From Penicillus capitatus (taxonomy: Eukaryota; Plantae; Chlorophyta), in NCBI GenBank assembly GCA_965649825.1, contig OZ287700.1:1426001-1490000 (forward strand): a DNA stretch of 64,000 bases, written 5' to 3'. This document shows, in pieces, positions 5,370 through 54,345 of this stretch. The position numbers were made by a program, and so were the translations under genes. The notes beneath the pieces were generated by a model. It worked only from the letters and a program-made list of their open reading frames with translations. It made no database searches and was not told where the DNA came from. The stretch's first letter is position 1, and the number at the start of each line of letters is the position of its first letter.

Positions 5370-5547
5370 CCATCCGTTGTCATCTTTCTGTCGTTGATAT
5401 GTTCACGATTGCTATCAGCGCACAACGAATGAAAACCCATCCCACCTTTGCAGACGGTGCGAAAAAGATGTTGTGTCATGTGCTAAACATTGTAGACATC
5501 CATCTGTCTATGGTAGTGGTTCTCTTTTCGATTCAGAGAACCCTGTT

Positions 5548-8500: not shown

Positions 8501-8613
8501 CTTCGATGCTTCAGAATTGGCAACGGAGGTGTCGATGTGGGTCGTCTTGGACGTCGCCATGGTCGGGGTAAAGGATCTATACGAAGGGAGACTCTTTGCG
8601 CTGGCGTCGTCAT
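5548..8613 (-). CDS. Uncharacterised multi-exon protein: transit-peptide-like N-terminus, one TM, long E/K/R/Q coiled coil, C-terminal TPR-like helices
   Basis: Exons from ORFs 8032..8739, 8004..8243, 7588..8028, 7117..7308, 6367..6816 and 5548..6321. The junctions checked (TRQK|VLVISAAG and FGTH|GLLDSDELL) splice in frame via GT-AG. TM segment IILAFVLVLSI. Confidence 0.6.
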
Positions 8614-8665
8614 TTCAACCGAATCGCAATTCGGTGTACGACGTTCGCCGCGTTCGATCGGCGTC

Positions 8666-10545: not shown

Positions 10546-10568
10546 CGCATGGCAACTTCCATTTCATC

Positions 10569-13841: not shown

Positions 13842-13866
13842 TTTCCATGAAGCATAAAGCGTTCGT

Positions 13867-15222
13867 TTATAAGTAGATGTCATAGAGCGACAGATACGGA
13901 TCTGCCGTGCCGTTCATGAGATCATACAGTGAAGCCGTTGTTGTGTATGTCTGTGCTTCGACGGTTTCGACATGAAGCGGAAGATACTGATCATCATGAA
14001 TCAGCACATGCGCTTCCAGCGTCTCTGCTGGACCCGTTTCCGTACGAACCTCCATCTGTAAACGCAGCAACAACACGGCTTGCGAAACAGCTGTACGCAA
14101 CGTCAGAGATGCTTCTCTTGGATCCATCTGTGGCCGATGGAGACTCAAGACCTGTCTGAGCAGATTCTCGTAGGGTAACACATCCGATGCAGCAGCTTCG
14201 GCAAAGGGCCAGCACGTGGGCGACAACATCTGATGCTGATCAACAGACGATGCCTGAATCAGAAGATCCGTTAGGCGGCGGCGGCGGCGGCTTCGAACCA
14301 GGCTTGTTACTTTGTTAGGCAAGATGTGGATGACGCCTGGCGATGTTTGAACGACATGCACAGGATGGTGTGCGAGTTGTGAGAGGGTGATGCCTTGAGG
14401 TGACGGTTGTGCCCACAGCGCTAACGGTATCTGACGCTTTCTCACATCCTGTCGCAATGCAGCACTCATCTGCATCAGTCCAAGCATCGATTTTTGGTCC
14501 TTTCCTCGCCAGCCATCGATCTCATCCCCGTACTCGGTCGACACATCATGCAACTCTACAGAATCGCTGACGGGGGCAGACTCAGTTTCGAAGGGTGTCT
14601 GTCTATACATGCATATACTTCAATTTGAGGGATGCCAGTCCATGCAACTTCACATGAGCACCATCTTCGATCACCATACGGACCATATCGTTGATCACTT
14701 CGGCCTCGGGTGGGATCCGCAGGTGGACTCGACTCGAAAAGGCCCATTCGATTTCTAGCGGACCAGAGAGCGACACCTCCGGCAGCAAACAGGGCGATAT
14801 CTGCATTTCGGTCTCAACCTCAGCGCCAACCTGCCGCAGAGACGCAGCACTCTGCAGCACAAAGGCGCCTCAGCATCAGACCTGTCACATCATGAGTGAC
14901 CATCAATTCGGGCCGTACGAGTCGTTGCCATTCATCTTCTCTTCCGACATGTGCCTTGTAGAGGCGACGGTCGATTTCAAGGCCGAGCTGCAGCTGCCGG
15001 CCACAGTACACCTATACACAGGGACGTTCAATTTCGCGCTTTTCCGTCGTCGAAGCCAACTTCGAGGGAGTCATCGTCGATGGTCTGCAGCCGGACGGAG
15101 CCGGGGAGAGTATCGAGCACCGCCTCTGCCGCTTTCCACGGCTGCAACGGCGCAGTGATCGACGCTTCAATCCCGACAACGAAACAGAGAGTAACCCAGC
15201 TGTGCACAAAAACACGCCACAT
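13867..15222 (-). CDS. Uncharacterised protein with N-terminal signal/TM segment; 4 exons
   Basis: ORFs 15028..15255, 14820..15011, 14603..14860 and 13867..14610 are separated by about 50-nt GT-AG introns (e.g. DDSLE|VYCGRQ). MWRVFVHSWVTLCFVVGIEA is signal-like. Confidence 0.55.
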
Positions 15223-15318
15223 GAAATTGCGTCGGACGATGAAAGGGGACAACACGTCATCGTCATTCGGTAGACATCTTCATACGCCTTCCCTCATTCT
15301 CTCAACAATGCACCCATC

Positions 15319-16537
15319 ATGCGTTTCTTCGTTCAGGGATTCACTCGGCACCGTTGTATCGAAGTGCAGACGTCGTCTTCCGATGTGTTCTTGGTCGAGG
15401 CCATCTGTCACCAGCATCCCACATTGAAGGGCTTTCCCTGGGAACGTGTGGTGAGCGTCGAGCACGGTGTCCTGTGGAGATGGACACATGTGTGCGCAGT
15501 GGCTGTGTTGTGAAGGACAGAGTTTGGCGTTTGCCTCTAAGCGACTACAGGAGCTGCCTCTTCGCGAAGGCAGCACTGTACACGTCTCTGCGAAGCTTGT
15601 GGGAGGAGGAGGTGATGGCGGATCGACAGGAGCCGAATCTCGAGATGCCTTTCTGGAAATGTACAAGATTCCTAAAGCCGACAAAGTCCAGTGCACTCCT
15701 GCGCGACCTTCAGTGGTAGAGAGGGGAATGGATTCCAGGTCGATGCTCACGAAGAGAAGCTGGCGAAATGGACGTGCTGTCAGTTGTCTGGGCATAAACT
15801 GACGCCGCCTTGTGTCTGCGACGAACTGGGGACACTCTTCAACAAAGACGCCGTGATTCGGGCGCTGATTGACAAGACCATGCCAGAGAGTCTCTCTCAT
15901 ATCACTTCTTTGAAACATGTCATCGCACTCAAACTCACACCGAAGCCATCTTCCAAGTCAGATCTCTGGCAAGGGTGTGGGCTTTGAGTCAAGTGAGGTG
16001 TAGAGAAGGGGCTGAGTCTGTAAAAGACGCAGGGAATTATCAGATGATGCGCGGCGCCGAAGTGCAGTTTCATTGTCCACTGACACGTAAGGGACGCCTT
16101 TGCTTCGTGTCGTGACCGTTTAGGGAATGACCGATGCAGATTTGGAAATGAACGGCACGTTCCGTTTTTCGGTACATGTCAAGACGGGTCACGTCCTGAG
16201 CGATCGAGCGATCAAAGATGCGCCGAGGACCATCGCGGAGATTCTGGGAATGGAAGCAGAGGCAGCGGACTGGTTGCCCCTCAACGGCTCTGCAGATGTG
16301 GTCAAGGTTCTCAAGGACAAGCTCGTGGCCAAGCGCAAAATCTCGAAGAAGAGCAAGAAACGACATCCGATGTCATCCGACAGCAAACGCCCGAAGAAAA
16401 AGCGAACGGCTGTGGACTATGCCCCAGAAGAGGCATCGAAGCAGATCTACGCTTCCATCTTCTCTAGGGAGAGCGACCAAGGAGACGAGACATTTCTCTG
16501 TCGCAGCGTCGGTGCCAGAGGCATGAATTTGACATAG
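15319..16537 (+). CDS. RTF2: Replication termination factor 2 (Rtf2 RING-like) with N-terminal ubiquitin-like extension
   Basis: LVGGGGDGGSTGAESRD, WTCCQLS, CVCDELGTLFNKDAV, HITSLK, FHCPLT and KTGHVLSDRAI motifs. Confidence 0.9.
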
Positions 16538-16888
16538 GGCTGTGGCGCGATCGAGGAGAGGAGCCATGAAGTACATACACTGAGATTTAACAAATCTACT
16601 AGTGTCACACACATAGAATCAATCGAATACATCTTTAATTTCTAACATCGTCTGAGAGCCATTTGACAGTGGATTGATTACAAAGAAGTGCGTGGTACTG
16701 GAAATTGGGGTCAGCAAAATGAAGCAGTCAGACGCCATTCTTTTTAGAAATGTCCTCATATTAGGACGGCAAAAAAATCAATGAAGAGGAGAATTCATAA
16801 GAACTGTTCCCAGTGTCAACGACAACAACAACAACAACCAATCAATCAAATTACTCAAAACGGAGTCAAAGACACAGACAGAGGACCC

Positions 16889-19800
16889 TCAAGCTCTTGT
16901 CGTCCTTCCTCCACCCACTCTGGGGATTCCGGAGGTCGGCGCTAGAGAAGTCGAGCGATTTATTTTGCCAGATGGTTTCATGCTCGTTCGCACGTCTTGC
17001 CCATTGGGAGGAGACGCGATGGACGAAGCGACCGGGGCCAGGCTTCCGGTTCGGACAACCGGTTTCCGTCGGTAATCGCTCATCAAACGGAGCTTCATTC
17101 TTTCTTCCAGCGCCTCCGCTTCCATATCGTTGCTCAGCACTCTCAGTCTTCTCCTGTCCTTGGGACACATGTATCCACCGTTCTTTTTCTGAGTGCTGGC
17201 CACGAGGCTGGTTTCCTCTGGGAGGCCTGTCGTGCGAAGCTGCGTTAACTTCTCTTTGGCGATCATATTCTTTGGTCTCCATTCTGTGGCTTCGTACCTC
17301 CAATCCTCGTACGTGACGTCCAGCTCCTTCTTTGCCTTCTTCTTTTTCTTGGAGTTCGTTAGGTTGGGCGGTGAGCTCACCATCTGGTGTGCATACTTTA
17401 CGAAATCTGCTGGCTCAACAGCAAGCTCTTCAAACAGATCTCCTAACTCTACTAACTGATGACTAGCAACATACGCCTTTTCGGTCGCCCGCTTAGCAGA
17501 TTTATCGGAAGCCTTGTCCGCTGAGAACAACACCACGACAACATCGATCCGTGTTCTCGTCAGGAGAGCGTGAGCTACCTTCGAGTTTGTTGATGTATTT
17601 TCGCTCCGTGTCCACTTTTCTGGCTAACAGAGACCACAGGGAATTCAACTGCCGAATCACCTGGGTGTTCTCAGCCAGTTCTTGCTTGTGTCGAGAGATT
17701 TTCAACAAGGCACGGAAAACGGCGATGATCTCAGTGAAGATAACCTGTCGACCACGCCAGAGAACCACCATCAAATAACGGGAGCTGTGATATGACAGGG
17801 CTTACCGGACAATCTCTGTAGTATTGCAGACGTTCACTGAGAGTGTCAAGACACTCCGACGCTTTGAAAACCTTCATCGTGAGGCCCTTATACTTACAGA
17901 GATTCTTCAATATGAGGAGCCCCCTCTTGAAAGCCGCCTGATGGTCCGTACTTCTGTTACACTTGGCCATGACCCTCAACAGCGGAATCAAAGCATCGGA
18001 GGACACCAAATCCTCGCAACAGCGTTGACTGTACATCGTGCCCATTTCCAGCGATGCCAACGCAAGAAAAGTCTACCACAGAACATACCATCCTCATAAA
18101 GAGTGAGAATAGAGTGAGGGACCATACCTGCTCGACATTTGTGTTGTTCTTGACAGTATGACATGCAAGTCGGCATTTGGATGCCAGTGTCTTGGATGGA
18201 TCTTCTTGTGCTCTTTTCTTGGCGGATTTGAGGCGGTTGACAGCTCTCTTGACATTCTTGGATGCATTCGTCCGCGCATTGAATCCCTTCCATGCGCTCT
18301 GGATTTTAACAGCTGCTGTCTCCATACGTCGTTGCTGCCGATCTATTTTTGATGCTCTAAATGCTCTCTGGATCACGATGGCTGCCTGTTCCTTCCTCAT
18401 CTGATATCCTCGCCAGGTTCTCTGAATCAGAATTGCAGCATTCCGTTGCCTGAGAAATTGATGTCTCGCTTTCATTGTTGGCAGCCAGTTCTGCACAACA
18501 GCGGTCGCTGCTGCTCTCTTTGCAAGTTTCTGACGGAATTGATAGCCACGATATCCATTCATAATTTTCTGCACGGCCAGTCGTTCCTTGGCCACATTCC
18601 TTATTTCCGATGGCAACATACGGTTGTGCTTTCTAGCGAGTGCACCTCGGGCATAGGCTTGAATAACAATGGTCGCCTTTACCACGTCATGCGTATGTTC
18701 CATCGCATGCACAAAATCGACGAGAATTGTAGAGAGACGAGCTTCGACATCATCCAACCATTGCTGCGTCTGATGAAGCCGAACAGCCCGCTGGATAATC
18801 ACAGCGGACTGCTTGAGCTTCTGATAGTTCTGGTGCTCCCTGTAAGCCTTCCACGTGGATTGAATCTGCGCAGCAGCGCGATGCTGATGGCGCATATCAT
18901 CCCTATTGAAACTTCGGAACCATCGTTGGATCTGCACAGCAGCGGATTTCTGTGCTTGGAAATTGGAACGGGATTGGTGCATTCGGACAGCCGCCTGAAG
19001 GGTAAGGGCAGCGGCTTTCTGTTTACGGAACGTATTTTGGGCAATATGGGTGCGCCACTGGGACTGGATACGCGTGGCGGCATCATTTGCAATTTGATGG
19101 GACTTGTGTGCTATATATTGTCGATAGGCGGTCTGGATCGTGATGGCTGCTCTCTGCTGAGCAATGGATTCTTGTTTGGAAAGGCGGGCTCGGTATGCGG
19201 CTTGAATCGTTACGGCAGCGCGTTGCTTCTGTTGGAACTCCTTTCTCTGTAGCCACATGCGTGCCCAGCTTTGCAGACAGATCACAGCGGCGACCAAGCC
19301 CTGGAACTGCTTTCTAGCTATATGCATTCGATAAGTTGCCTGAATGCAGAGCACGGCATTTCTCTGGGCACAAAATCGCGAATGCCACAGATGTGCCCGA
19401 TACTGTGCCTGGATCTTGATGGCTGCCTGCTGCATCTCCTCGAACTCCTTTCTCTGTAGCCACATACGTGCCCAGCTCTGCAGACATCGTACTGCTGCCA
19501 GCACCGTTTCGTAGTGCTTCCTTGCGATGTGCATTCGATAAGCGGATTGAATGGCGACGGCGGCGTGATGGTGTTTGCGATCGGTGTAGTTTCTGAAGGC
19601 AGATTGAATGATGATGGCACCTGAACGCATCTTGAGAAAGTGATGGCGCTGAGCGAATCCTCGCCAAGCAGCTTGTATGCAGATGGCTGCCTGGGCAGCT
19701 CTCTCCGCTTCCTTCTTCTCTTTCATCTCCTTCATTTTTGCCTTCAAAACCTCCACCGCTTCCTTCATCTGTCGATAGCGTTTCTGCATCGCATGTCGTC

Positions 19801-22447
19801 TCCATTGCGACTGAATAACGACAGCCGCTGCGCGTTTGCGTTTGAAATCTTCACTGTGGACATGTCTTAAGTACTCGGCACGAATCCGATTGGCGGCTGT
19901 CTTGACAGATCTCAGGTTTCGTAGGTATCGAGTCCTGTCTCGGATCATAGGCTGGTGATTCTCAATCGTCTGCACTGCCTTCTTCAGTTGCAGAAACTGC
20001 CGTCGGACAATGGATCCTCTGGCGCGCGCCTGAAGTCGCACCACCGTCTCGACATCTTTGGGATCGATCTCGATATAAGTGGAATCGAATCCGGAGAACA
20101 TCGTTCCGCCGGAGCTGCTCGATGTCCGACTCCGCGAGTACTGCTGACGGTGATACTCAAAGGCCGTGAGCTGACTGCCGATGGAATCGCGGCTCTCTTT
20201 GGCCCTCTTCTTGTTCTTGCGTCTCTTCTTGGCTGCTTCGAGTTCGATCAGCTCAATCGGATCAGCATAGCCTTTGTAGATCTTCCACATTCTCTGAATC
20301 GTCAATGCAGCACGTTCCTCCCGCGACACTTGCAGAAGCCGTGCACACATGTGAGATACATAGAGTATGACTGCCGTTTCATCTGGGCCTTGCTCTTCAA
20401 AGTCCATAGCCGAGATCGTTTCAGGAATGCCGCCCAACGCACGCATGACGGAGAAAACGGCACCGAAGTTCTGTAAGATCCCAGCCCTGTGCTTCTTGAA
20501 AGTACCCTTGTCCATCCAGCCTTTACCACTGTACACGCCAAACTGCTTCAAATCCATATCGTCGTCATCCGATTCAAATTCCTCCACATCCGATTCAGAG
20601 TCGATTGAAGAACGACGCGAGATCTCTTCTTTGATAGCTTCTGTCGTGTCAGCAATGTATACTTGTTTCGGTTCCATATAGGATGGCAGATAATGACAGA
20701 TCAAGTAGCAGAGGACACTGCCGTCTGCAAATGAAGAGTGGTAGTTCTTAACAGATGCTCCATACTGATTAACGACCGTCTGGACCCACGTTAACAGCAA
20801 AGCCAGACGCCGGTCATAACCAGTCGGAAAACAAATTTTTGTCGTGTCCACCTGAGCGGAATGTGCACGACTGCGGACTTTCACTTGGATGATTTCAAAT
20901 ACCAATGCACTAACGGTGACTAATTTTGGAATCTACACAGATCGCATGTATTGGTAAGAGAATGCGAGGCAGTGGAGATAGACTTGGAAAACGAGGGCGA
21001 CGTTCCAGAGGTAACCAACAGTGGTATCGCCGAGGCCATCCACGATATCTTGCGGAGGGATGGGGCGTCCGTTGAGCAAAGCGGCCGTCTAGACAACACA
21101 GCTGAATCAGCATGAGTACAATTTCCCCATCGGAGTGACCTTTTCGTGATGCGCGAATGTTTGAAGTGCCAGTTTCACGTTGTACACCTTGACAGCATTG
21201 GATGACGTGTTAAAGTTCGCGCGTTTCAGAACTGGAACCCCTAGACGGCACCACACAGTGCATCCATGTCTCGGCGTCCTCTGTGTTTACCGAGCAGGAT
21301 TTCAGCGAGCTTGCAAGAACGGATTCCGTCTCGAAAATCAATAGAGAGGTCCGTCGAGCGGTAATCGAACTCGTTGACGACTCCTTGCTGATAACGAAGG
21401 GAGTATCCCATATACTCAAGTTGTTTCACGGTATCTCCTTCTCCGAAGAGACTGCCCTTCAAGAAGAGTCGGACCATGTCGGCCGATGTCTTGATTTTGG
21501 CCGTCGGTTCAAAGAGAAGCGGCAAACATTCAGGCAATTCAGCAGTAGTCAATGTTCTATCCAACAACATCACCAGCAATAAAAAGCGCTTAAGGACCAG
21601 GGCGGCTAGCTCTTCCCGTAAAGTCGCCTGTCGTTTGACGTTTTTCTTAATCTTCTTCTTCAGTTCAGGCGAAGAAAAAAATTGCTCTTCGATAAAAGAT
21701 ACCAATTGTGATTTGAGTGAGGATGGACCATCTTCCTCCGTGGCAGTTGTCATCGACGGTGCTGCGCTGCTTTGGCCTAGAATAAGAGTGAGAAAGAGTG
21801 AGAAATCATGGACACATGCCTTTGACTTTCTGCTTAGCGGAGATGGTCATGCGGAAAACCGTCTCCAGTCCAATTTTGAGCCAGAAAGCATCGTACCCCA
21901 TCAGTGTTTTCATGGCTTTCTTTTTCATTCTGGGGTTGACCATAAAACCACCCTAAACACAGCAACGTCTGCTTAGATTTTTCTCACACTTGGGGAAAAG
22001 AGTGAGAACGTCTTTGAGTAGCTTTAGTCGGCCATTCGAGATACTCGCTTCCACTTTGAGCATGGCGGCTTGGACCGTCGGGTCTTTGTGATACACTTTT
22101 GCGACGCATCCTCGCACTTTGGCGAAAAGACGTTTCGAGTTAAGTGACGCCGGGTTTGCTGAGCTGGTCGGCGAAAGAACGTAACTAAGCCACGCTTGGT
22201 ACGCGCGCTGTTTCTTTTCTATCCAAATTCTGCGTACATCACAACGAAGACGCCGTCAAACGACGACCGGTGACGCGCCGAGGCGGACCCTTTTGTGTAG
22301 TAAGTGTAGTCTTTTGTCGTCCTCGAATCTTTGGAAGCCATGTTGTGGTCGACAATGAACGTCTTTGCAGCAACGAAGCGGGATGGATGCACGCACGTAA
22401 CGGACAGTACTGCTGACGCAGCAGGTGATGATGTGACAGCTCAGCAC
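16889..22447 (-). CDS. ASPM: Abnormal spindle-like microcephaly-associated protein homolog (CH domains, many IQ motifs, ARM-like C-terminus); 5' end unresolved near 22.3-22.45 kb
   Basis: WIEKKQRAYQAWLSYVLSP (~22.2 kb), GYDAFWLKIGLETVF (~21.9 kb), LKRFLLLVMLLDR, DFRDGIRSCKL, SFADGSVLCYLICHYLP, and more than 20 IQxxxRxxxxR motifs in 17957..20905. Confidence 0.9.
19235..19545 (-). repeat. Recent internal duplication of a three-IQ unit in ASPM (207-bp period)
   Basis: gaactcctttctctgtagccacat occurs at 19235 and 19442; the protein repeats YRMHIARK...AAVxCLQSWARMWLQRKEF 69 aa apart. Confidence 0.85.
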
Positions 22448-24796: not shown

Positions 24797-27700
24797 ATGT
24801 CGACGGAAGAGTTTCAGGACTTCAGTTATGCCACCCATTGGGAAAGGTCACCATATCCACCATCTTCTTTGCTGGAAGATGTCTCTCGTTGGCAGATTCG
24901 CCGGAGAAATCGAGCAAGTGCTGCGGCGATGGCTCTGGACGCAAAAAGAAAACCTTACCGAAGAGCACTGCGTCGTCGAACTGAAACAGAAACTGCATTT
25001 TCGAAAAGAACCCTACATCCTCTCATTGCAGATCCCGGGGGAGCTGCATCTCACTCCTCCGACAACAATGCCAGAGACGGCTGCCAATCTCTCTGCCAAT
25101 ACTCCAGAGTCTATCGGAAGCTACTCGAGTCCCTCCGGTTCGGATCCAGATGAAGATTTCGAATTTCTGCCTCAGGAAGAGACAAAGACGGACATTGCCG
25201 ATGCCAGACCCGAGAGAACACGCATGCGCTCCAATCCCGTCTTTTCCAAAGGACTCTTTGTGCCGCCCATGACACACTTTGCTGTGGAGGATGCATCTCT
25301 GCAGCGATGGTTTGGCCTGTCGCGTTTTGTTCTGTTACGCGCTGGGAGTCCATCGGGTCGCATTCTTGACGCCCAAGAGGCCAACACATTGCTCAGTGCC
25401 GCCTCTGTGGCGCTCTCTGAGTTCCTGAGACCCCTCGCCATCCTCATTCCCATACAAAATGCATTCCGTGATGCTTACAAAGGTGTGGCTGTCGTCGATG
25501 GCCGCAGTGTCTTCTTCGATATCGACAGCTCTCATCTCATCCAGCAATCGGATCACTTGAGATCGGTGGCAGGACAGCTTCAGGTGTTGGCCAAACAGAT
25601 AGAGCGATACAGTCCCAGAGGTGCCCGTCTGTGTGAAGATATCGCCTGTGGGGTAGATAGCGCGGTCGAAGGATACGAGGTGCAGGTGTCTTCATGTGTG
25701 ACCTACAAACTGCCGCTTCCAACCACTTCCGAACGACTGAGGCATTCCACTGGCGATCCGAATCTGGAACAGATCGAGGCGGAAGCGGCGGCTCAGTGGA
25801 GTGAGGATTGGGATGATGGATGTGTTTGGCAGCCATGGGGTGCTGAGAAGGATCCAGTCGCGTCATTGGAGCTGGATCTGGTATGGGGTGATGTGGAACT
25901 GACCCCCGACAATCCAACCCCTGTCCTCTCGGCCATGAACGCCGCCATATGGCGCATCAGTGCTCTCTCCGAAGAACGACAAGTCTATGAGAGCTGGGCC
26001 ATCTTCTCGAGTAAAAATTCCTTCAATCGTCGCCATCTGCGTTTCCCTTCTGTCGGAGAGATGCCTGTCGATGCCGCGGTGACAGAATTTGACGAAGATA
26101 ACTTCCGGAGCCTTTCGGCACGTCTCAATGCTCTACTGCAAGCGCGGTTCATGTCCGAGGCAGCACGGTCCGTCGGCGAGCTGGCTTCGGAAGACTGGTG
26201 GGAAGAGACAGGAACACGAGGGCCGTCGATTCCACCAGAAGATGTTTTCAAAGAGAGCATCGAAGATATGTTCGGCGAGGAATACAGTGGCCGAAATCTC
26301 TGGTCGATGACAAAGCATGTGGACGACAATCAGCCGCTGGCGCATAACGACAAGACATCGATCCAAGGCCTCCAGCGATGTACACTGAACCGGATGTTGC
26401 CATTGGACTCGTTGACGGCCAGACTGGGATTGCATGCTGTCGTCTATCGCAATGCCAGGGCGGTGGCATTGCTCTGGAGTCATTTCATCCAGGCCATCCG
26501 TCTGCATTACTGGGAGAAGCTCAAGCACATCCCGCTCTTCCCCCTTCGTGCCTGACCCTCCGCCATTCGGCTGCGATAAGAATGCGATGCGTGTCTGTAG
26601 AGAAAGCCAATCGAGATGAGGAACCGGAGTCTCCAGACTTTAACGCCAGTCTAATTCATCAGAAACTCCAAATTCTGAACGTCTGCATTCACAGGTCGCC
26701 ATTTCACTCTCCTATTCACGTCGCATGTGTGTCCAACGACAGACTCGTGCGAAAGAGAAGAACAAAATCTGTGGATCAGACGGCTGTGGAAGAGAACTTT
26801 GTTGATGTTAGGGGAAGTCCAGAGGAGAACTCGACCGACGTCGGTTCGCAGGACAATCCAGGGATCAAGCCGCGAGGCGTTGCTGGCGTTTTGGCGGGGG
26901 CCTTCCTTGAGCACCACCCCGATACACCTATCAACATTCCTATCACACAGGTGCGTCGTCCTTCCTTGACTCTGCCTGAGGCAAATCGCACGGACTGTTG
27001 TGATCAGTTGATGCCAGTTCACACATCGGATTCGTTAATGGAGGAAGCGACTCTGCTCTCTGCACTGCACGATTCGCCTGACGATCGTGAACGCGCTGCC
27101 AAAGAACAGGCAAAAGTGCTCCTGTCTGATATGGCAGCCTTCAAAGCGGCAAATCCAGAGGCGCAGCTGAGTGACTTCATCAAGTGGCACTCGCCTAAAG
27201 ACTGGGTCAAGCGAGAGAATGGCGAAGGATGTCTCTCTGTCAGAATGTCACACGAGGCAGACAATCAGTGGATGCGATACTGGTCTGAGGTCGAAGCTTG
27301 CCCGGCTATTGAGCAAATTCCTCTCTTCGATCCAGCACTGGCTGGCGAACGGGCACTGTACTCTCTGGAAACGATGGAGCCTGTCAAGCTCTTCACTCAG
27401 CTTTTTCAGATAGGTCTGCTTGCCTGTTTTGGCAGTCTTCAACGGGGACTCTCTGCTAAACTGCCATCCATACAACATCAAAGCGGTCTCTTTCGCAAAG
27501 ACCTCAAAGAGAAGATTCCGCACTTGGAGGATCAACCTGAATGCGCCACAGAGCTGCTCGACGCCTTCAAAGTCTGTCCTGTTAGAATCCGGAACCTTCT
27601 GTGGTATAGGATGTGGTCGCTAGGCACTGGAGAGAGGCGTCGTGGCGGGTGAGAGTCTGTTGCGGCATCTTCCTGGGTGTCATAAGACAGTCTCGCTATT

Positions 27701-29951: not shown

Positions 29952-29964
29952 GATGACTCGCTCC

Positions 29965-29999
29965 GCGATCGGCGAATGGCACGTCACATCACGCGGTGC
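29965..29999. promoter_or_regulatory. 35-bp block identical to 54246..54280; candidate (bidirectional) promoter element containing CACGTCAC
   Basis: gcgatcggcgaatggcacgtcacatcacgcggtgc is identical at both loci, while the flanking paralogous sequence has many mismatches. It lies 13 bp from the DXR ATG and 65 bp upstream of the XRN1-like ATG. Confidence 0.5.
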
Positions 30000-30326
30000 G
30001 ATTGCTGGCCTTCGAATTTGACGACCGCTCAGAACTCCCGTTCTCTTTCGCGTTTTGTCCAGTAGAACAACGTCGTTCCGGTTGGATGCCTGGCGCTGTT
30101 CAGTTAAACTGGAGAAGGGGCCAGCCTCGAGCCGATTGGACTACCTCCTGTGCGTCATCCCCGGTATGGACGCTTCTTTTCTGACGGAAACGCACCAGTG
30201 CATAGTCACAGACGACGAGTCCTGCTATAAGAAGCTCTACAAGGACACCCCTGTCGTCGACAGTGTCTCTGTTGCATGTTCCCTGACGCGTGTGGCTTTC
30301 AGGTCGAAGCTGGACTTCTCCGTCGA

Positions 30327-30339
30327 CATCGAGGGGGCG
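30327..30339 (+). repeat. 5' target-site duplication CATCGAGGGGGCG
   Basis: Identical 13-mer at 35565..35577; single copy at the empty paralogous site 56422..56434. Confidence 0.95.
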
Positions 30340-30349
30340 GATCAACATA

Positions 30350-32071
30350 ATGCAATCATCTACGCCTCCCACTGGAGGCAGCGGGAGTTTTGCGGCGGCA
30401 GCGCAAAACGCGACCCCGACCGAAAACGCACAACAACCGGCACAAACGACGCGCTTTGGACGACCAACGACGGCCTCGGACTGGGCAGACCAAACGGACG
30501 CGGACGAAAAACTCGGCAGATCGGACAAGCGAGGGTTTTACAGAACGACGATGAGGCGCATACACGGATGTCTCTCGACCCTTGAGCAAGCCGGCGTCGA
30601 CCACCACGCCCTGAAAACGGCCCTCTACCTAATCGAAGCCATGGAGGGAGGCTACGGCATTGGCCAGAGCGACATGTCCCGCGAAGCGCAACAAACCGCA
30701 AGGCCAGCAACAGTCCAGGCGAACCCCCTCTATCAAACGACCATGCCCTCTCTCCTACAACAACAACGAGCGCCAACCGGAGCCGAGACGACCACCCAGC
30801 AAATGCAGCAGACAACCAGAACAGCGTCGTACGCAGAAGTGGCCAAATCCAATTACTTCCCGAGCAGCCCAACAGACCAAGTACCCTGGACAATGGTCGC
30901 AAGACAGCAAAGACCCAAGCCAGCATACGAAACACAAACCCCAGAGCAACAAGCAAGAAGAAGAATCATGAGCGAGATGTGGAAACGCAGCTCACCAGAG
31001 GACCAGAACATGGCCAGACAAGTCTTCATCTCGCCTGTCATCGAGGCGGCCTCGATCAAGCGTCCTACCTACAACATGATGAAGGACGCCCTAACGATTT
31101 GGGCCAAGAACCACGGCGGCCAGGTGCAATACCTTAGGGGGCTCACCTCCGGAGATATGCTACTCCAGCTAGACCAGAACGTGATGACCTATCTCAGGGA
31201 CAACTTTTTCCCTGAGATAGACCTTCACCTACTGGGCTGCTGGCAGCCCAAACCTAGCCATCAAGATACATCGATCCCCAGCGTTGTAGTCGAGGGAGTA
31301 GACCGCTTCCTGTCACACAGAGCGGTCGTGGAAAAACTAAAAGACCCGGAAAATGCGACATGGCTGGGAGTCCAGCCAGAAACATTACAAACGGCGACAC
31401 TCACTTTTGTGAGATTTCACAGAAAAGTGGATGGCAGTGCTCCCGAACCTACCTCCACCGGAAGATTGGTTGGCCCACCAGAAATCATCACCCGCATGGC
31501 CCAGAAGACCGGAATATACGTGGGCTACCCCTGCTATGTCAGAGAATTCGCCCAACAAGAGAAATGGAAGACGGGTAACCGAACCATGGAAGTCGACTCC
31601 ACGAATAGAGGAGCCAAAAGAAACACACAGGAACGAGAAAGGGAAGAGGCAGACGAAATGATCACTCCCAGCAGAGAAGCGGAGCAGCCTCCCGAACCAA
31701 GCACCTCGCGCCGTCGGACAGAGACCCCGCCGCCCATCGATCTGACAACCGAAGAGAACAATCCAACATCAGAAGCTCCCCCGGATAAAACAGCAGAGAC
31801 CCCAACTCAGACAGCGAACCCTCCTGACCGGTCGGCAACGCTCCCACCAACCTTCCAAGCAGAAGAAGAGAACCTCGACCAAATAGCCCGAGCAATCAAC
31901 GATAATCTCTCGGAACTGACGGCCCAGTTCGACCAAGGCGAGCCAAAAACACAGCGCCCAGAGGCGGACCAGCCCCCACCAGAAGGATCAAAACAGCAGA
32001 GCTTGGAACCAGAGAAACGAAGATTCAGCGAGCGCCTAAGAAGGAAGCGCCAAGAAAAAGAAAAACAATGA
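30350..32071 (+). CDS. LINE ORF1 (gag-like nucleic-acid chaperone; no CCHC knuckle visible)
   Basis: First ATG inside the element is at 30350. SYAEV motif, central PSVVVEGVD..VVEKL segment, long acidic/Pro-rich C-terminus; directly precedes ORF2. Confidence 0.8.
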   Translation: MQSSTPPTGGSGSFAAAAQNATPTENAQQPAQTTRFGRPTTASDWADQTDADEKLGRSDKRGFYRTTMRRIHGCLSTLEQAGVDHHALKTALYLIEAMEGGYGIGQSDMSREAQQTARPATVQANPLYQTTMPSLLQQQRAPTGAETTTQQMQQTTRTASYAEVAKSNYFPSSPTDQVPWTMVARQQRPKPAYETQTPEQQARRRIMSEMWKRSSPEDQNMARQVFISPVIEAASIKRPTYNMMKDALTIWAKNHGGQVQYLRGLTSGDMLLQLDQNVMTYLRDNFFPEIDLHLLGCWQPKPSHQDTSIPSVVVEGVDRFLSHRAVVEKLKDPENATWLGVQPETLQTATLTFVRFHRKVDGSAPEPTSTGRLVGPPEIITRMAQKTGIYVGYPCYVREFAQQEKWKTGNRTMEVDSTNRGAKRNTQEREREEADEMITPSREAEQPPEPSTSRRRTETPPPIDLTTEENNPTSEAPPDKTAETPTQTANPPDRSATLPPTFQAEEENLDQIARAINDNLSELTAQFDQGEPKTQRPEADQPPPEGSKQQSLEPEKRRFSERLRRKRQEKEKQ

Positions 32072-35000
32072 TGCCGCGGGCATCCCACCGCGATCACCCA
32101 TACGACTGCCAACCAAGGACAAACACACAAAAAAGCAAAAAGACAATTCGAATCAACCAAATCAACCTGGCCAAGTCCCCTCTGGCATGGGAAGATCTCA
32201 AGATCCAACTCGATCGAGACGAGATTGACGCAGTACTAATCAGTGAACCGCCAAAATGCCTCCAACTGGGACGCACAATCCCCTCGGAATACACATGGAC
32301 GTACCAACAGAACGAATGCACGTGCGGAGCAGGGATTTTGTACAGGAAAAACCTCCGAGTCACGAAGCCGATCGAAGACACCCCACGGATAAACACCATA
32401 GCGGTGAAGAGGGAGAACAATTCAGCTCTGTGGATCTCTTCCTTCTACCTTCAGCCGGAGACACTGGAAGGCCTACACGATGTACAAAAGGTCAGCACAG
32501 AAGTGATCAAGACCGACTCCCAGTGGATACTGGGAGGAGATGCGAATGCACACTCCAGCCAATGGAGTCAATCTGACAACAACGAGTGCGGAAACAGAAT
32601 GGAGGACTGGATACTCGAGAACAACCTCTTGGTGATCAACGACCCGGACAGTGAAGCAACGTTCTCACGAAAGTCCACTCAAGACCAATGGCTCGACATC
32701 ACCCTCTCGACGCAAGGAATCTCGAGGCAGATCACTGAGTGGCAAGTCAAGAAAGAAGCCATCCCCAACTCCGATCACACCCTCATCCACTGGGAGATCG
32801 ATGGCCAAGACGCAAAACTCACCGATCTCAAGCAGAGGAGTTGGGCAAAGACGAACTGGGAAGAATACCGTGATCTTGTACAAGCCTTCCTACCAACTCT
32901 GCCGCTCTCTATAGACTCGGTTGCCCGGCTCGAGGAACAGACGAACCTCCTGACCAAGGCTCTCAGCACCGCCATGAAACTTACCACAAAAATGGTGGAA
33001 CCAAAGAAAATCCCAAGGAACTGGTTCGATCAGGAAGCCCAGAAACTACATAATCGTCTCCGGGCAAGCAAAAAAGGAACCAGTGAACACAACGCCATTC
33101 GGTCTGAATGGAAGGAACTCGTCAGAAACAAGAAACTACTATCCTTCCAGAAGTTCACAGAAAGCACCGACGACCATAACTGTTGGGAGGCATTGCGAAG
33201 ACTCTCCGACCCCAAGAAGCTGAAACCGATCCACTCACTCACCGACCAGAACGGAAGAACAAACGACCCGAAACAAATGGCAGACCTCCTTGCGCAGAGA
33301 TATTTCCCAGAGCTCGAACCGGGAAGAAGAACGGACGAATTCAGACAACAATCAAGTAAAACAAGAGACAAATACTCCCCGACGGACGGCAAACCAAAGA
33401 GAAACACCTGGTCCCACAGAGAGATCTGGGAAGAACTCCAGAGAGGCCGAAGGAAAACAAGCCCTGGACCTGATGACATCCCTTATCAAGCCACCCGAGC
33501 ATGTGCTGACATCCTAACCCCTTGGCTAACCGCAATATACAACGCCATCATCGACACCGGTCACGTACCTCGACAATGGAAGGTTGGCAAGGTATGCAAC
33601 ATCCCTAAACCGGGTAAGAGCGGGGAAGAAGCCAAACATTACAGACCAATCACCCTACTCAATTGTGTCTCGAAGATCTTTGAAACCCTGGTGACCAAGA
33701 AAATCAGTACATGGGCAGAGGACAAAGGGGTCTTGCCAGACAGCCAATATGGCTTCAGGAAAAACCGCACCACAAGTATGCCGCTGGGCAACCTTACCTC
33801 GAAAATCTGGAACTCCCTCAACCGCCGTCAAAAACTGACCTCGGTCAGCGTCGACCTAGAAGGTGCATATGACCGAGTAGTGCCGTCGATCCTGATCGAA
33901 CGACTAGAAGAAGCAGGGCTCGACGAAGACATCGTCAGAGTCGTATGGAACCTGTTGACAGACAGGGAAGCTAACATCACCATAGAGGAAGAGAACTTCT
34001 CCTACCGACCAGAAAGAGGCCTCCCCCAAGGATCGCCCGTGAGTCCGATACTCTATATCTTATACTCTGCGAGCATTCCAAAATACATACCAAACAGCGT
34101 ACACATAAATATGTACGCTGACGACATCGTAATCTACAAAGAAATGACATCCGAGAAAGACGAGACACAACTACAAGAAGCCCTAGACGGACTCCTGAGA
34201 TGGTGTGACGACTCTGGAATGAAGATAAATCCCGATAAAACCCAAACCATAACCTTCCGAAGGAACAGAGACCAGACGCAGCCACATCTCCGACTTGGTC
34301 AACACTCCCTTCAACACACCGAGACAATGAAATACCTCGGCATCACCTTCGATGAGCGAATGTCCTTCGAACACCACTTGAAAGAGAAGACCAGGCAGGC
34401 CACCCAACGAATACATGGCATCAGAAGAATGGCACGAGCCCTATGGGGCGCCTCATCCCACATAACGCGAAGACTATACCAGATGTGCATACAACCACTG
34501 ATGTTGTATGGAAGCGAGATATGGATCACCCGACTAAACACGATTAGAGCGAGCAAGATGTTGGAAAGAATCGGAAGACTTGGTGCCCTTACCATTACGG
34601 GGCTCGATCAAACTACATCAGCGGAAACTGCAATGACACTCGCCTACCTCCAGCCCCTCAGCACCCTCGCTACCGCACAACTACTCAAGTCGGCCCCACA
34701 AACTTACAAAGACCCTAAGAACCTAATACGGCCTCTATCACCGCCGACCCACTGCACCCCAGAAGCAACGCTCCGCTCAGAACTGGAGAGAGTATGGCAG
34801 CACCACCACCAAGAGAAGAACAGAAGACAACGCCCGACAGAGGACGAACTGCATCAAATGCTCAAAAACAGGGATCTATTTGAGCAATGGTATACAGAAT
34901 ACCTAGAAGAGCAAACAAACAGACAATGGATACTGTCAAACAAGAGCCAAAGTCTCAAAAACATAGGATGGCGAAGGATAAACAAAGAAAAGCCCTGGTT

Positions 35001-35352
35001 CGACCACCCGCTGTGGACTAAAAGAAAGACAACTCAAATCAACAGAATGCTCTCAGGACACATCCCGACCCTCACCTACCTGCAATCCCGAGGACGAGAA
35101 GTAGACGATGTCCACTGCCGCCTCTGCAGAGAAGCTCCAGAAACCAGAGACCACCTCCTTCGGTGCCCGGCTCTCAGAAAAACAAGAAGGATGTTATTCA
35201 TGGAAGAAGAGCTCACGATCGAAAAATTCGGACCGCTCCTCCAAGAAGCAAAACTCTTCTACTCATTCGACCAATACTGTTCCCACTGCCACCAATACAT
35301 ATTGCAAGAAACAGGGGGTAAGAACAAAACCCCAAACACCAAACACCAATAA
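32068..35352 (+). CDS. LINE ORF2: apurinic-like endonuclease, reverse transcriptase, C-terminal CCHC finger; no RNase H
   Basis: QINL, ISEP, GGDANAH..W, DITL and SDH (APE); YRPITLLNCVSKIFE, QYGFR, DLEGAYD, PQGSPVSP, YADD and KYLGITFD (RT); CRLCREAPETRDHLLRCP. Confidence 0.97.
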   Translation: MMPRASHRDHPYDCQPRTNTQKSKKTIRINQINLAKSPLAWEDLKIQLDRDEIDAVLISEPPKCLQLGRTIPSEYTWTYQQNECTCGAGILYRKNLRVTKPIEDTPRINTIAVKRENNSALWISSFYLQPETLEGLHDVQKVSTEVIKTDSQWILGGDANAHSSQWSQSDNNECGNRMEDWILENNLLVINDPDSEATFSRKSTQDQWLDITLSTQGISRQITEWQVKKEAIPNSDHTLIHWEIDGQDAKLTDLKQRSWAKTNWEEYRDLVQAFLPTLPLSIDSVARLEEQTNLLTKALSTAMKLTTKMVEPKKIPRNWFDQEAQKLHNRLRASKKGTSEHNAIRSEWKELVRNKKLLSFQKFTESTDDHNCWEALRRLSDPKKLKPIHSLTDQNGRTNDPKQMADLLAQRYFPELEPGRRTDEFRQQSSKTRDKYSPTDGKPKRNTWSHREIWEELQRGRRKTSPGPDDIPYQATRACADILTPWLTAIYNAIIDTGHVPRQWKVGKVCNIPKPGKSGEEAKHYRPITLLNCVSKIFETLVTKKISTWAEDKGVLPDSQYGFRKNRTTSMPLGNLTSKIWNSLNRRQKLTSVSVDLEGAYDRVVPSILIERLEEAGLDEDIVRVVWNLLTDREANITIEEENFSYRPERGLPQGSPVSPILYILYSASIPKYIPNSVHINMYADDIVIYKEMTSEKDETQLQEALDGLLRWCDDSGMKINPDKTQTITFRRNRDQTQPHLRLGQHSLQHTETMKYLGITFDERMSFEHHLKEKTRQATQRIHGIRRMARALWGASSHITRRLYQMCIQPLMLYGSEIWITRLNTIRASKMLERIGRLGALTITGLDQTTSAETAMTLAYLQPLSTLATAQLLKSAPQTYKDPKNLIRPLSPPTHCTPEATLRSELERVWQHHHQEKNRRQRPTEDELHQMLKNRDLFEQWYTEYLEEQTNRQWILSNKSQSLKNIGWRRINKEKPWFDHPLWTKRKTTQINRMLSGHIPTLTYLQSRGREVDDVHCRLCREAPETRDHLLRCPALRKTRRMLFMEEELTIEKFGPLLQEAKLFYSFDQYCSHCHQYILQETGGKNKTPNTKHQ

Positions 35353-35564
35353 AAGAAAGAGCATGCAAACAGCAGCCTCGTTAGACCATCGGACTATGAA
35401 AGAGCACCCACAGCGGGAACGAGCAATCTCGGACAAATCAACAATTCTAGTTCTACAAACAATCCCCAATTGACAAAGACACTTCCCTTGTAGCTCCTCA
35501 CAGGAACCGGGTCATATGCCCCAGGCGGTACCCCCTGTGTTGTAACCCAATTCATCATCATCAT

Positions 35565-35577
35565 CATCGAGGGGGCG
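35565..35577 (+). repeat. 3' target-site duplication CATCGAGGGGGCG, preceded by (CAT)4 tail
   Basis: Sequence reads ...aacccaatt-catcatcatcat-catcgagggggcg-tggaac. Confidence 0.95.
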
Positions 35578-37130
35578 TGGAACGACCAGGAGAACAAGCT
35601 CCTGATCCGTCCTTTCAACTACTATCGGATCACGAAGACGATCGGCAGGTTCAAGGGCGTGCAGAAAGAGATCTGACCGGATCAGGCCCTCATCGACGAC
35701 GACTTCAATCACAACTTCGTCCCGAATCACCGTCGCGCTCCGCAGCAGCACCTCTCGTGTGAAACGTGCGATTTCGTGCAGAGAGCAAAGCGAAGAGCTA
35801 CTGCACGTCGACGATCAACAACTACCAGGATGTGAAGTGCTCCTGCGGATCGACAGTCCTGTGGTCACGGCCTGTTCGCGAAAGGACATCCCCTTGGCAG
35901 AAAGGTTCCGCACTGTCGAGCACCATGTCCTGAACTTCGACCGTCGATTGCATCAGGTCCTTCGCTGCCGTTCCCGCCCGGTTTCCCGACACTCGATACC
36001 GTCCTGCAAGTCAGATGGCCGTTCCAACGGCGCGCGACTCAGTGTTCTGTGCAGTTGAAGTGCTGCATGATGCAAATGAAGTGCGACCGCTACGCTCGAC
36101 AGAGTGAGCGCGAGAGTCTTGTCATCGAAGTGTCCGGAGACAGCTACAACTGGCCCGGGGGTGCCAAGAAGGCGATTCTGCGACCAACCGACGGATGAAC
36201 AGATCCCCTGTTCCCTGCGACAGGTGTTTGACAGTCTCAAGGAGCAGGTGGTGTACATCGGCTACCCCTGCAAGACACGTGCCACCGTCATCGGAACCAC
36301 CGATCCATGGGCGACGTGCTACGTCCCTGGCAAGTCCCAGAGATCTCTGTACGGCGGAAACCACACGCGGGAGCATCAGATTCTCTCCACGCAGATGAAG
36401 CAGGACCTCTGGGTCGAAAGCGCGATCAACCCTGGTCGATGTGGTATCCTTCTGCACGTCATCGTCCAAGGAGACCTGAAGGAACGCGAGGTGCACTATC
36501 CTCTCCAGATTCGTCTGGAACGCCTTCGCTCGTTCGATGGTCGTGGAAATTGCTACGCAGCTGACGTTGATTTCGTCCGACGGGGGATTTCTCTCCGCCT
36601 ACCAGTGCTACTTCCCGCCCGAACAGATCGACACGATCTCCGTCGCCCAGACCTACACACGTTTTCGCTTTGGTCCCTTGGCATTGCAGTAATGTCTGTG
36701 CGGGTGTTGGAAATGAGAGCGTGCAGAACGAGATCCAGTCGTCTGTTCTGGGTCCCGTGGTTTCGGAAATGATGCTTTTGCCCGCGGACTCGGTAACTGT
36801 CAATGCCGCCTCGGCCTTGGATTCGAGCTAGACGACGTATATGGAGCTGACTCTACGCACATCCTGTAGTCTCTGCATTGACTCAGGTCTGTCTCCTACG
36901 TCTGTCTTTCCGCGTGTGCGCGGCCGCGGCGCACGTTTGTCTGAGCATCCCCGTCAATTCACGTGGCAACAGGACCATCGTCTGAAGACGTTCTCGCTTT
37001 CGTACTGCATCGTCCTGTCTTTCTTGCTCGATTAGGAATAGCACCTACGATGCCATTTCCCGACTAAAGCTTTACTTCGAAAAGACCGTCGTCATCTTAC
37101 CGTGTACGGTATTTCATCCGAGCGTGCACT

Positions 37131-42152: not shown

Positions 42153-44064
42153 ATGTCATTCGCGAAGTCTTTGCCCTTTTTGGTGCTCTTCGCCGTTGCC
42201 TCGGCGATGTGTGCACGCGAGGCACCAGAGGATATCGAACACGGGTTTGCTCACCACGGGAGGACAGACTCCCTTCCCGTTTCCAGGATGGACAACGGAC
42301 GTGATGCTCTTCTGGTCGTGTTCTCCTCGTCCCCGAGCAGTCGGCGACTATTACGTGAAGAAGCAAAGGTAGAGAGACATCCATCACACGTGTCGTCGAG
42401 AGAAGGAACCATCCCTGTGTGCCATGCAGACCTTGATTGAAGCGACGCTCTCAGGAGATGTCAAAGCTGTAGAGTCTGCGCTCAGAAATGAGGACACAGA
42501 CATCGAAATGGAAGAAGATAATGGAGTGCGACCGTTGATGGTTGCGGCTCTGGGAGGGAACCTAGCCATCGTTCGACTGCTGATCGAGGCCGGTGCAGAT
42601 ATGGAAGCCAGGGATGATCGGGGGTGGCGAGCACTGCATTTTGCTGCCGGCCGAGGACATGCTTACATTGCCGAGTACCTGGCAGAGCAGAAGGCAAGAA
42701 TAAACGCCAGGAACGACGAGAAGCGCACGCCTCTGATGCTGGCATCGCAGTACGGCCATCTGGCAGTCGTCGGCGCTTTGGTAGGGGCGGGAGCAGATCC
42801 AAACTTAGCGTCAGAAACAGGATTCACGGCGCTTCATCACGCCGCCTTTCGAGGACACAGGAATGTTGTGGAGTTTCTCCTGACGCTCGAGAGCGTCGTC
42901 GTCGATTCGAAGGAGGAGAACGGAGCGACGCCCCTGTACTTGGCGAGCCAAGAAGGGTTTCCGGAAATCGTCCGCCTGTTGGCCAAAGCTGGAGCGAATG
43001 TCAACAAGGCGAGAGGAGACGGATCCACCCCTCTGTTCATTGCTTCGCAGCTGGGACACCTCTCCGTCGTTCACAGCCTGATCGACGCAAAAGCGGACAT
43101 CGAAAAGAGTGAACGTCGCACTGGGGCGACGCCACTCTACATTGCATCGTACGAAGGGCACGGGTCGATCGTGGTTGCCCTCACGGAAGCCGGCGCGGAT
43201 CTCGAAGCGAAGACGTCTCGTGGAATGACACCTCTGCTCGCGGCGATTCAGCAGGGTGCTACGAACGTCGTGGTGCATCTCCTGGAGAGCGGCGCCAGTA
43301 TTGAAGCGCGTTCGAAGAACGGATGGGGTGCTTTGCATGTCGCTGCTGCGAATGGATACATCAGCATTGCGAAGCTCCTTGTCAAACGAGAGATCGACCT
43401 GGAGGCCAAAGAGAACACCGGCCGCACGGCATTGCACTTGGCAGCATCGGCCAACTGGCATCGAATGATTGCTCTGTTGCTGGACAACGGCGCTCAGATT
43501 CACGCCAGGACCGAAAAGGGAGCAACGGCCTTGCACCTCGCTGCCGTCGAAGGGAACACCGAAACGATCGACACGCTCATCGAATTCGGCGCCGATCTCG
43601 AGGCTCGGTCGGGAGATCTCCGCACGACGCCTCTCTTTCTGGCAGTGTATAACAACAACACGGCGGCCGTCAGGCTGCTGATTAAGAAGGGGGCAGATAT
43701 CGATGCCAAGAGACGCAATCGGCAGACGGCCCTCCATCTTGGCATGCTTCGTTCGATCGACGTGGATATCATCAAACTGTTGACGGACCGTGTGCTGGAT
43801 ATAGATCCCAGAGACGAAGAAGGGGATACTCCGTTGGCATACGCAGCAATTTATGGAAATGTCAAAGCGATCAAACTGTTGCTGAAACGAGGAAGTGATC
43901 CTCATCTAGTCAATAAACGAAGATTGGCACCGCGTGACCAAATCTGTGCCTGTCGCAATTTCTCAGAGAACTACGTGGCTTGCGTTGAAGAGAATTGTTC
44001 TTCGGCGGCATCGCGACGACAGATCAGACTTCTTTTTTTGAAAGCGAAGACAAGGACCGAGTAG
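42153..44064 (+). CDS. Ankyrin-repeat protein (~15 repeats) with N-terminal signal peptide and C-terminal Cys motif; 2 exons
   Basis: MSFAKSLPFLVLFAVASAMCA; in-frame intron 42369..42429 joins LLREEAK|TLIEATLSG; repeated GxTPLxxA/LH motifs; ICACRNFSENYVACVEENC. Confidence 0.88.
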
Positions 44065-54202: not shown

Positions 54203-54345
54203 AAACACCAATTCCACTTTTTATCGACAGACTGTCAGCGCATCAGCGATCGGCGAATGGCACGTCACATCACGCGGTGCTTCATCAACTGGCCCTCGGA
54301 TTTGACGACCGCTCAGAACTCCCGTTCGGTTTCGCGTTTCGTCCA

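Follow-up and report, generated by a model that had tools for sequence, protein, structure and literature searches.

Positions 30340-35564 (+ strand) of a 64,000-nucleotide stretch of contig OZ287700.1, called the window in the following, are occupied by a complete non-long-terminal-repeat retrotransposon, or long interspersed nuclear element (LINE), of 5,225 bp with two open reading frames (ORFs). Both frames are free of interruption, as a preliminary description of this DNA had stated, and the motifs quoted there (QINL, GGDANAHSSQW, YRPITLL, KYLGITFD, LYQMCIQPLMLYGSEIWI and CRLCREAPETRDHLLRCP) are all found in the translation. The element has the hallmarks of a LINE of the apurinic/apyrimidinic (AP) endonuclease type, namely an AP-like endonuclease in the N-terminal part of ORF2, a reverse transcriptase (RT) with a YxDD motif, target-site duplications (TSDs), a simple-repeat tail and no terminal repeats; a self-BLAST of the window gave no repeats of the long-terminal-repeat (LTR) kind. 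The A-rich sense strand is reflected in an AT skew of +0.31 to +0.38 in the three 2-kb intervals over 30001-36000, compared with -0.17 to +0.07 elsewhere in the window. No second LINE copy was found by self-comparison of the window, and an Rfam search of it gave no matches. The coordinates of the features are collected in Table 1.

Table 1. Features of the LINE and of its target site, in window positions (aa, amino acids; nt, nucleotides; UTR, untranslated region).
Feature	Start	End	Strand	Remarks
Whole LINE	30340	35564	+	5,225 bp; A-rich sense strand
5' TSD CATCGAGGGGGCG	30327	30339	+	identical to 35565-35577 and 56422-56434
5' leader GATCAACATA	30340	30349	+	10 nt; first 8 nt vary among copies
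ORF1	30350	32071	+	573 aa; ATG at 30350; no known domain
Boundary of shared 5' module	31740	31939	+	200-nt interval, breakpoint ~31,790
ORF2	32068	35352	+	1,094 aa: AP endonuclease, RT, CCHC knuckle
AP-endonuclease core	32434	32787	+	Exo_endo_phos_2, aa 123-240, 7e-18 (Pfam)
RT domain	33601	34350	+	RVT_1, aa 512-761, 3.5e-36 (Pfam)
Zinc knuckle CRLCREAPETRDHLLRC	35116	35166	+	CX2CX8HX3C, aa 1017-1033
3'UTR	35353	35551	+	199 nt
Three-tier 3' stem-loop	35499	35539	+	conserved in L001 and in the L002 sister family
(TCA)n tail	35552	35564	+	microsatellite, not poly(A)
3' TSD CATCGAGGGGGCG	35565	35577	+	perfect 13-bp repeat
Empty target site	56422	56434	+	open frame (SKLDFSVDIEGAWNDQENK) of XRN-family exonuclease gene

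The perfect 13-bp TSD and the empty site in a paralog, both noted in the preliminary description, are confirmed. The duplicated sequence CATCGAGGGGGCG has three matches in the window against 0.13 expected, a count reached in none of 100 shuffles. The left flank (30094-30339) is 93% identical to 56190-56434 and the right flank (35565-36848) is 96% identical to 56422-57705; since the two matches overlap by exactly 13 bp, the paralog holds the true empty site. Upstream of that site, the paralogous XRN gene has its XRN_N (54257-55299) and XRN_M (55506-56381) domains. The copy that bears the LINE retains only 29962-30339 and 35565-36848, the equivalent of 54367-56189 being gone. The LINE interrupts an exon-like part of an XRN duplicate that is truncated, and the insertion was probably neutral. 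Compared with 54243-57705, the two retained pieces are a truncated and rearranged duplicate of the XRN 5'-3' exonuclease, 85-96% identical, in which the segment for most of XRN_N and XRN_M is absent and which adjoins the 5' end of a DXR gene.

The ATG of ORF2 overlaps the stop codon of ORF1 as ATGA. Within ORF2, the complete endonuclease domain spans approximately aa 25-245, the YADD motif of the RT is located at aa 683-686, and the invariant D596, D685 and D686 are retained. The zinc knuckle sits inside a weak, sub-threshold zf-RVT match (8.6e-5, aa 977-1034; Pfam). In an alignment of 41 sequences, consisting of relatives plus the window element, C1017, H1029 and C1033 of the knuckle are invariant, and every residue that is invariant across the alignment is retained in the window ORF2. 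Only AP endonuclease, RT and CCHC knuckle were found in ORF2, with no sign of the restriction-like endonuclease that characterizes Dualen/RandI, and a Pfam search gave no RNase H. Among the aligned sequences, Exo_endo_phos_2 is present in all 41, zf-RVT in 16, and RNase_H (PF00075), located between RT and CCHC, in 19. The distance from RT to CCHC is accordingly bimodal, with one class at 111-144 aa and another at 271-317 aa. The window element belongs to the short class, C1017 lying about 139 aa beyond the RT match that ends at aa 878, which means that it is without the RNase H of about 150 aa. The earlier statement that RNase H is missing is thus borne out by both the Pfam search and the spacing.

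A second full-length copy, with 94% nucleotide identity to that in the window, is present on an 895-kb ENA metagenome contig (L001, 6152-11450). It lies in a different target and has its own 11-12-bp TSD, (T)CCTGCGTCCGC. Compared with the window copy it has 311 substitutions. In its ORF1 there is an in-frame insertion of 3 bp, its 3'UTR contains an insertion of 87 bp and two deletions of 1 bp each, and its sole coding frameshift is a 1-bp deletion in the endonuclease region. The ratio of nonsynonymous to synonymous divergence (dN/dS) is 0.16 for ORF1 and 0.14 for ORF2, at a synonymous divergence (dS) of 0.16-0.20, and the divergence of the 3'UTR is only 6%. The dN/dS of about 0.15 for both ORFs indicates selection on the family, and the divergence between the copies arose mostly in functional lineages, with constraint on both ORFs and on the 3'UTR. 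The family has accordingly been maintained by purifying selection and is active now or was so recently. From the absence of stops and frameshifts in the 5 kb of coding sequence of the window copy, which also keeps all invariant residues, we infer that this copy is young and potentially active. An exact-protein look-up of the window ORF2 gave no match, and a scan of JGI metagenomes for further copies returned only relatives at ≤31% identity.

A sister LINE family on contig L002 (ENA ERZ25074695, ctg274441, 1-11583) has an ORF2 with 43% aa identity to that of the window element. The three copies are located in three unrelated targets, so that no site specificity is seen. The last 70 nt of the window copy, L001 and L002 adopt one hairpin fold with 14 consensus pairs, three of which show compensatory changes; in L002 this hairpin is kept although the 3'UTR is otherwise unalignable and ORF2 is so distant. 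The tail of the window copy is a (TCA)5.7 repeat at 35552-35568 with 100% matches that reaches 4 nt (CATC) into the TSD, and as CATC is common to tail and TSD, the 3' boundary of the element is ambiguous by up to 4 nt. The tails elsewhere are (TCA)3 in L001 and (TC)n in L002. Hairpin and microsatellite tail together would fit a 'stringent' recognition of the 3' end by the RT. The opening CATC of the TSD is in register with the tail, which is what one would see if reverse transcription were primed by the nicked bottom strand (...GATG-3') annealed to (CAU)n. No SINE-like (short interspersed element) partner bearing the hairpin was found within the window, and a scan of viral contigs with the hairpin motif gave seven matches that look like chance. 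The 87-bp insertion of L001 (ca 11250-11340, at window position 35432) is apparently a duplication and is situated upstream of the conserved hairpin.

At the other end, the conserved sequence begins at TAATGCAATCATC, which includes the ATG of ORF1, and the 6-8 nt before it vary among copies. The start point is the same in the three independent copies (window 30340-30352, L001 6152-6163, L002 ca 7005-7018), and these begin 6-10 nt ahead of the ORF1 ATG, leaving virtually no 5'UTR. An internal downstream promoter, read-through from a host gene, or longer master copies outside the sample are possibilities for the transcription and translation of ORF1. An in-frame fusion of ORF1 to a host exon was ruled out, the two frames being different.

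The ORF1 protein has low-complexity N-terminal (T/A/Q-rich) and C-terminal (P/E-rich) thirds, and contains three cysteines in all of its 573 aa and no CCHC knuckle. Searches against Pfam and PDB gave zero matches even at E ≤ 10, Transposase_22 included, and comparison with the N-terminal extensions of related gene models gave no similarity; a single-sequence AlphaFold2 model has a mean confidence (pLDDT) of 37 and is unusable. An ORF1 with an RNA recognition motif (RRM) plus CCHC has been reported for I, R1, Jockey and Tad1 (PMC4120745). The L1 type of ORF1, with coiled coil, RRM and C-terminal domain (together Transposase_22) or, in plants, RRM plus CCHC, was not recognized here either. ORF1 fits neither type and is counted as unclassified. 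A weak palindrome of about 80 nt, 77.5% self reverse-complementary, lies within ORF1 at window 31165-31243.

From the 5' end to position ca 31,790, the L002 LINE and the window element are 90-95% identical; beyond that point the identity is 46-63%. This shared module of about 1.45 kb, which consists of the 5' end and most of ORF1, is 92% identical overall, and it looks as if it had recently been exchanged between families whose ORF2 sequences are 43% identical.

To classify the element, we used ORF2. In a HMMER scan of 1.84 billion representative proteins, 184,955 passed E ≤ 0.001 as relatives. All of the close ones for which clusters were looked up are metagenome proteins, and the named relatives among those looked up are all from arthropods (Artemia, Ephemera, Cordylochernes, Galleria, Bacillus rossius and Pieris). 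Word-index homology searches likewise returned almost only metagenome proteins, and the 41-sequence alignment as query gave 12 proteins at E ≤ 1e-20, none of them additional. The RT was placed in a bootstrapped neighbour-joining (NJ) tree rooted on human L1, in which the R1 label of the lepidopteran cluster was assigned with the TRAS1 endonuclease sequence as probe. The core family (the window element with P0001, P0129, P0002 and P0130) has 100% support, and it is placed outside the R1 cluster (76%) and outside two large clusters that bear RNase H (92% and 94%).

RNase H in LINEs is listed for the I group, plant L1, Proto1 and Dualen (PMC4640811), and the window element does not have the RNase H downstream of RT that marks the I group. 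With the R1 clade it shares homology of the endonuclease to TRAS1 and R1Bm and the missing RNase H, while its RT lies outside R1 in the NJ tree and neither sequence-specific targets nor CCHC knuckles in ORF1 were found. Endonuclease and RT are not nearest to L1 references, and the combination of AP endonuclease, restriction-like endonuclease and RNase H seen in Dualen/RandI is absent. RTE and RTEX elements consist of one long ORF, without a substantial ORF1 and without a CCHC at the C terminus. This is not the layout found here, and the long ORF1 and the CCHC knuckle exclude RTE/RTEX by architecture alone. On these sequence comparisons the element is best described, at group level, as an I/R1-like AP-endonuclease LINE of an RNase H-less lineage, which is neither L1 nor inside R1 and which is otherwise known only from metagenome contigs. 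A new clade is plausible. The original assignment to an I/R1/Tad/Jockey group, as opposed to L1 or RTE, is supported at group level; L1 is disfavoured by the endonuclease and the bit scores given below, and RTE is set aside by architecture only.

As for the host, the DXR gene (minus strand) lies 750 bp upstream of the LINE insertion. All named proteins among the 120 best DXR homologues listed belong to Viridiplantae, with Bryopsidales on top; the best matches are a EukProt green alga, Ostreobium and Bryopsis at 73-76% identity, and figures of 76-81% were also obtained for Ostreobium and the EukProt alga. In an NJ tree, the DXR protein pairs with the EukProt alga at 89% bootstrap support, which becomes 64% once Ostreobium is added, and the monophyly of the chlorophyte proteins is weak (37%). 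A DUF1350 gene is also present within the window. The host is most likely a chlorophyte near Bryopsidales, and the green-algal origin assumed in the first description is supported by the grouping of DXR with green algae. A table of LINE families from 2013 has only L1, RandI/Dualen and RTEX for green algae, and the catalogues for flowering plants have L1 and RTE (PMC3747384), so that the literature premise of that description was correct. No detail on LINE clades was found in the Ostreobium and Halimeda genome literature. Since I/R1-like elements are not in the green-algal table (PMC3747384), the present one is a host-range extension.

We consider it likely that this is a full-length and apparently retrotransposition-competent LINE in a chlorophyte nuclear genome, that it belongs to an RNase H-less I/R1-like lineage, and that it moves in the following way. 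A bicistronic RNA would start about 10 nt ahead of ORF1. The ORF1 protein, unclassified as it is, would presumably serve as an RNA-binding protein or chaperone, and ORF2 would probably be reached through termination and reinitiation at the overlapping ATGA. ORF2 supplies, by its domains, the AP-type endonuclease, the reverse transcriptase and the CCHC knuckle, and its protein probably recognizes the conserved stem-loop at the 3' end in the manner of 'stringent' LINEs. The bottom strand would then be nicked by the endonuclease at GTCGA^CATCG, the 3' end so released (...GATG) would pair with the (CAU)n tail and prime reverse transcription, and a second nick 13 bp downstream would give rise to the observed 13-bp duplication.

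It is important to point out that several observations weigh against this interpretation. The ORF1 is without the RRM plus CCHC architecture of I, R1, Jockey and Tad1 (PMC4120745), and it is hard to see where a promoter could lie in a leader of 9-10 nt. Named I, Nimb, Tad1, LOA, Jockey, CR1 and RTE references are absent from the NJ tree, whose nodes deeper than the core family have 6-40% support. The free energy of the hairpin is not better than that of shuffled sequence (z = +0.3 to -1.4), leaving its conservation in three sequences as the only argument for it. The host is placed by one marker gene, DXR, and the element is presumed to be mobile from its intactness and from selection.

One alternative is membership in the L1 clade of green algae (Zepp or L1-x_CR type), L1 being the most frequent kind of LINE in Viridiplantae. 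Algal L1 elements also have AP endonuclease, RT and C-terminal CCHC, and often tails other than poly(A); green-algal L1 families may end in (CA)n, (CAA)n or (TAA)n (PMC3747384). The weak zf-RVT match in ORF2 points the same way, as does human L1 ORF2p being the best PDB match of the RT (1e-22), a ranking for which no I-group or Jockey-group RT structure was matched for comparison. However, the endonuclease profile matches only R1-clade structures in PDB (TRAS1 at 3.8e-20, R1Bm at 2e-14) and no L1 endonuclease at E ≤ 10. The similarity of ORF2 to human L1 ORF2p amounts to 82 bits and is confined to aa 333-778, the RT region, whereas the arthropod R1-like LINEs, in the Galleria and Pieris models, are matched in single stretches of endonuclease plus RT at 200-262 bits. 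A Coccomyxa protein annotated as 'LINE-1 ORF2' scores 114 bits with the profile and has no pairwise match, and ORF1 has no match to Transposase_22. Taken together, these results make an L1 origin extremely improbable. A place in RTE/RTEX or in the Jockey superfamily (Jockey, CR1, L2, Rex1) has somewhat more to be said for it. These LINEs are RNase H-less like the window element, a microsatellite tail with a 3' stem-loop is found in stringent LINEs of the CR1/L2 and RTE types, and the tree, with its unsupported deep nodes, has no named RTE or Jockey references. Nevertheless, the long ORF1 and C-terminal knuckle are unlike RTE, nearly half of the aligned relatives have RNase H plus CCHC, and the endonuclease resembles those of the R1 clade. 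Moreover, P0005, which has an ALKBH8_N domain after the RT and may be CR1-like, is a far weaker match, at 116 bits in the pairwise comparison and 309 bits with the profile. We therefore regard this placement as unlikely.

Two further alternatives concern the host and the origin of the family. The host could be something other than a green alga, either another eukaryote with a green-type DXR or a chimeric metagenome assembly, given that the placement comes from one gene with weak chlorophyte monophyly and that the related contigs are from ENA metagenome assemblies. Against this, DXR lies just 750 bp from the insertion, its listed named matches are all from Viridiplantae with Bryopsidales on top, it pairs with a EukProt green alga at 89%, host sequence is present on both sides of the LINE, and the empty site is found 21 kb downstream on the same contig; we think it quite unlikely that the host has been misjudged. 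The family could also have been acquired recently from an animal by horizontal transfer, one of the options raised at the outset. All named relatives looked up are arthropods, and I-group LINEs are absent from the 2013 green-algal catalogue (PMC3747384). However, the closest of the named relatives reach only 200-330 bits pairwise, aligned relatives outside the core family are only 19-27% identical, and closer relatives occur on large contigs of eukaryotes, the longest reaching 4 Mb. In addition, the contrast between 43% identity in ORF2 and 92% in the 5' module, together with a dS of about 0.2 between copies, argues for long residence and diversification in one host lineage. A recent transfer thus finds no support and is very unlikely.

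Returning to the reading as a resident RNase H-less I/R1-like LINE, the closest known systems are those of the R1 clade (R1Bm, TRAS1 and SART1 of Bombyx). They have the same AP endonuclease, RT and C-terminal CCHC without RNase H in ORF2, a detectably homologous endonuclease domain (TRAS1, R1Bm), and two ORFs with overlapping stop and start codons, SART1 being known for its UAAUG stop-start coupling. They differ in that the window RT is outside the cluster labelled R1 by the TRAS1 endonuclease, in that the window ORF1 has no CCHC knuckles, and in that the window family shows no site specificity. Vingi, an I-group lineage of relatives of Ingi that have lost RNase H and are described from animals, may be taken as a precedent. 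The I-group elements with RNase H (I factor, Nimb, LOA, Ingi, Tad1, Outcast) have AP endonuclease, RT, RNase H and CCHC, the layout of many near relatives of the window element (PMC4640811). The A-rich sense strand is a further likeness to this group, and the I factor also has a trinucleotide tail, (TAA)n (PMC3747384). The window element differs from them in having no RNase H of about 150 aa, no RRM plus CCHC in ORF1 (PMC4120745), and almost no 5'UTR. Green-algal L1 (Zepp, L1-x_CR), RTEX and Dualen/RandI share the host kingdom, and microsatellite tails are common there (PMC3747384, Table 3). The similarity of L1 to the window element in endonuclease and RT is far lower, Dualen has a restriction-like endonuclease and RNase H that are absent here, and ORF1 and the CCHC knuckle do not fit RTEX.

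The mechanism and the ORF2 layout are canonical, and the element is otherwise mechanistically ordinary. Its importance is modest and lies in the host: the I/R1-like group is known mainly from animals and fungi, unlike the types catalogued in green algae (L1, RTE, Dualen). With an I/R1-like family that is intact and under selection in a siphonous-type green alga, the supergroup would have a wider host range than known so far, which would argue that it is older, or has been retained more widely, than one would think from sampling centred on animals and fungi. We tentatively go one step further and suggest that the element and its metagenomic relatives could form an undescribed RNase H-less I/R1-like clade resident in ulvophycean green algae. 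Such a clade would be unusual in three respects: its ORF1 would be of a new type that has no zinc knuckle, transcription would begin practically at the start of ORF1, and the whole 5'/ORF1 module would have been exchanged recently between families with only 43% ORF2 identity. If this is true, the LINE supergroup extends into Viridiplantae. For annotators of transposable elements the sequence would be a seed, as current libraries would probably miss or mislabel the family, and the 5' module shared by divergent families is a clean natural case of modular (reticulate) LINE evolution.

Some observations on the surroundings of the three copies can be added. The host genes of the window are long, intron-poor ORFs (208-4480, 8342-11681, 17957-20905, 26378-27652 and 42424-44064). 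Their types include a periplasmic-binding/NCD3G/ephrin-receptor-like receptor, a TRP-like channel, TMEM120 and DUF1350, and further an IQ/CH-domain protein, the catalytic subunit of Rab3GAP and an ankyrin-repeat protein. On L001, LTR-retrotransposon ORFs with aspartic protease, RT and integrase are found at 12921-17962 (minus strand), 1.5 kb downstream of the LINE copy.

The L002 LINE is interrupted, exactly at the point corresponding to window position 30928, by the pol of an LTR retrotransposon (L002 475-2856 and 6976-11284), with protease, RT and RNase H to one side of the LINE split; the integrase lies on the opposite side and runs in frame into the LINE ORF1. The contig appears to be a circular permutation or a tandem arrangement. 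Three satellite copies of about 245 bp (L002 6270-7005) separate the 3' end of one LINE, with its (TC)n tail, from the 5' end of the next, and at both LINE/satellite junctions the satellite unit is broken at one and the same point (GAAGTC|GTCGGC).

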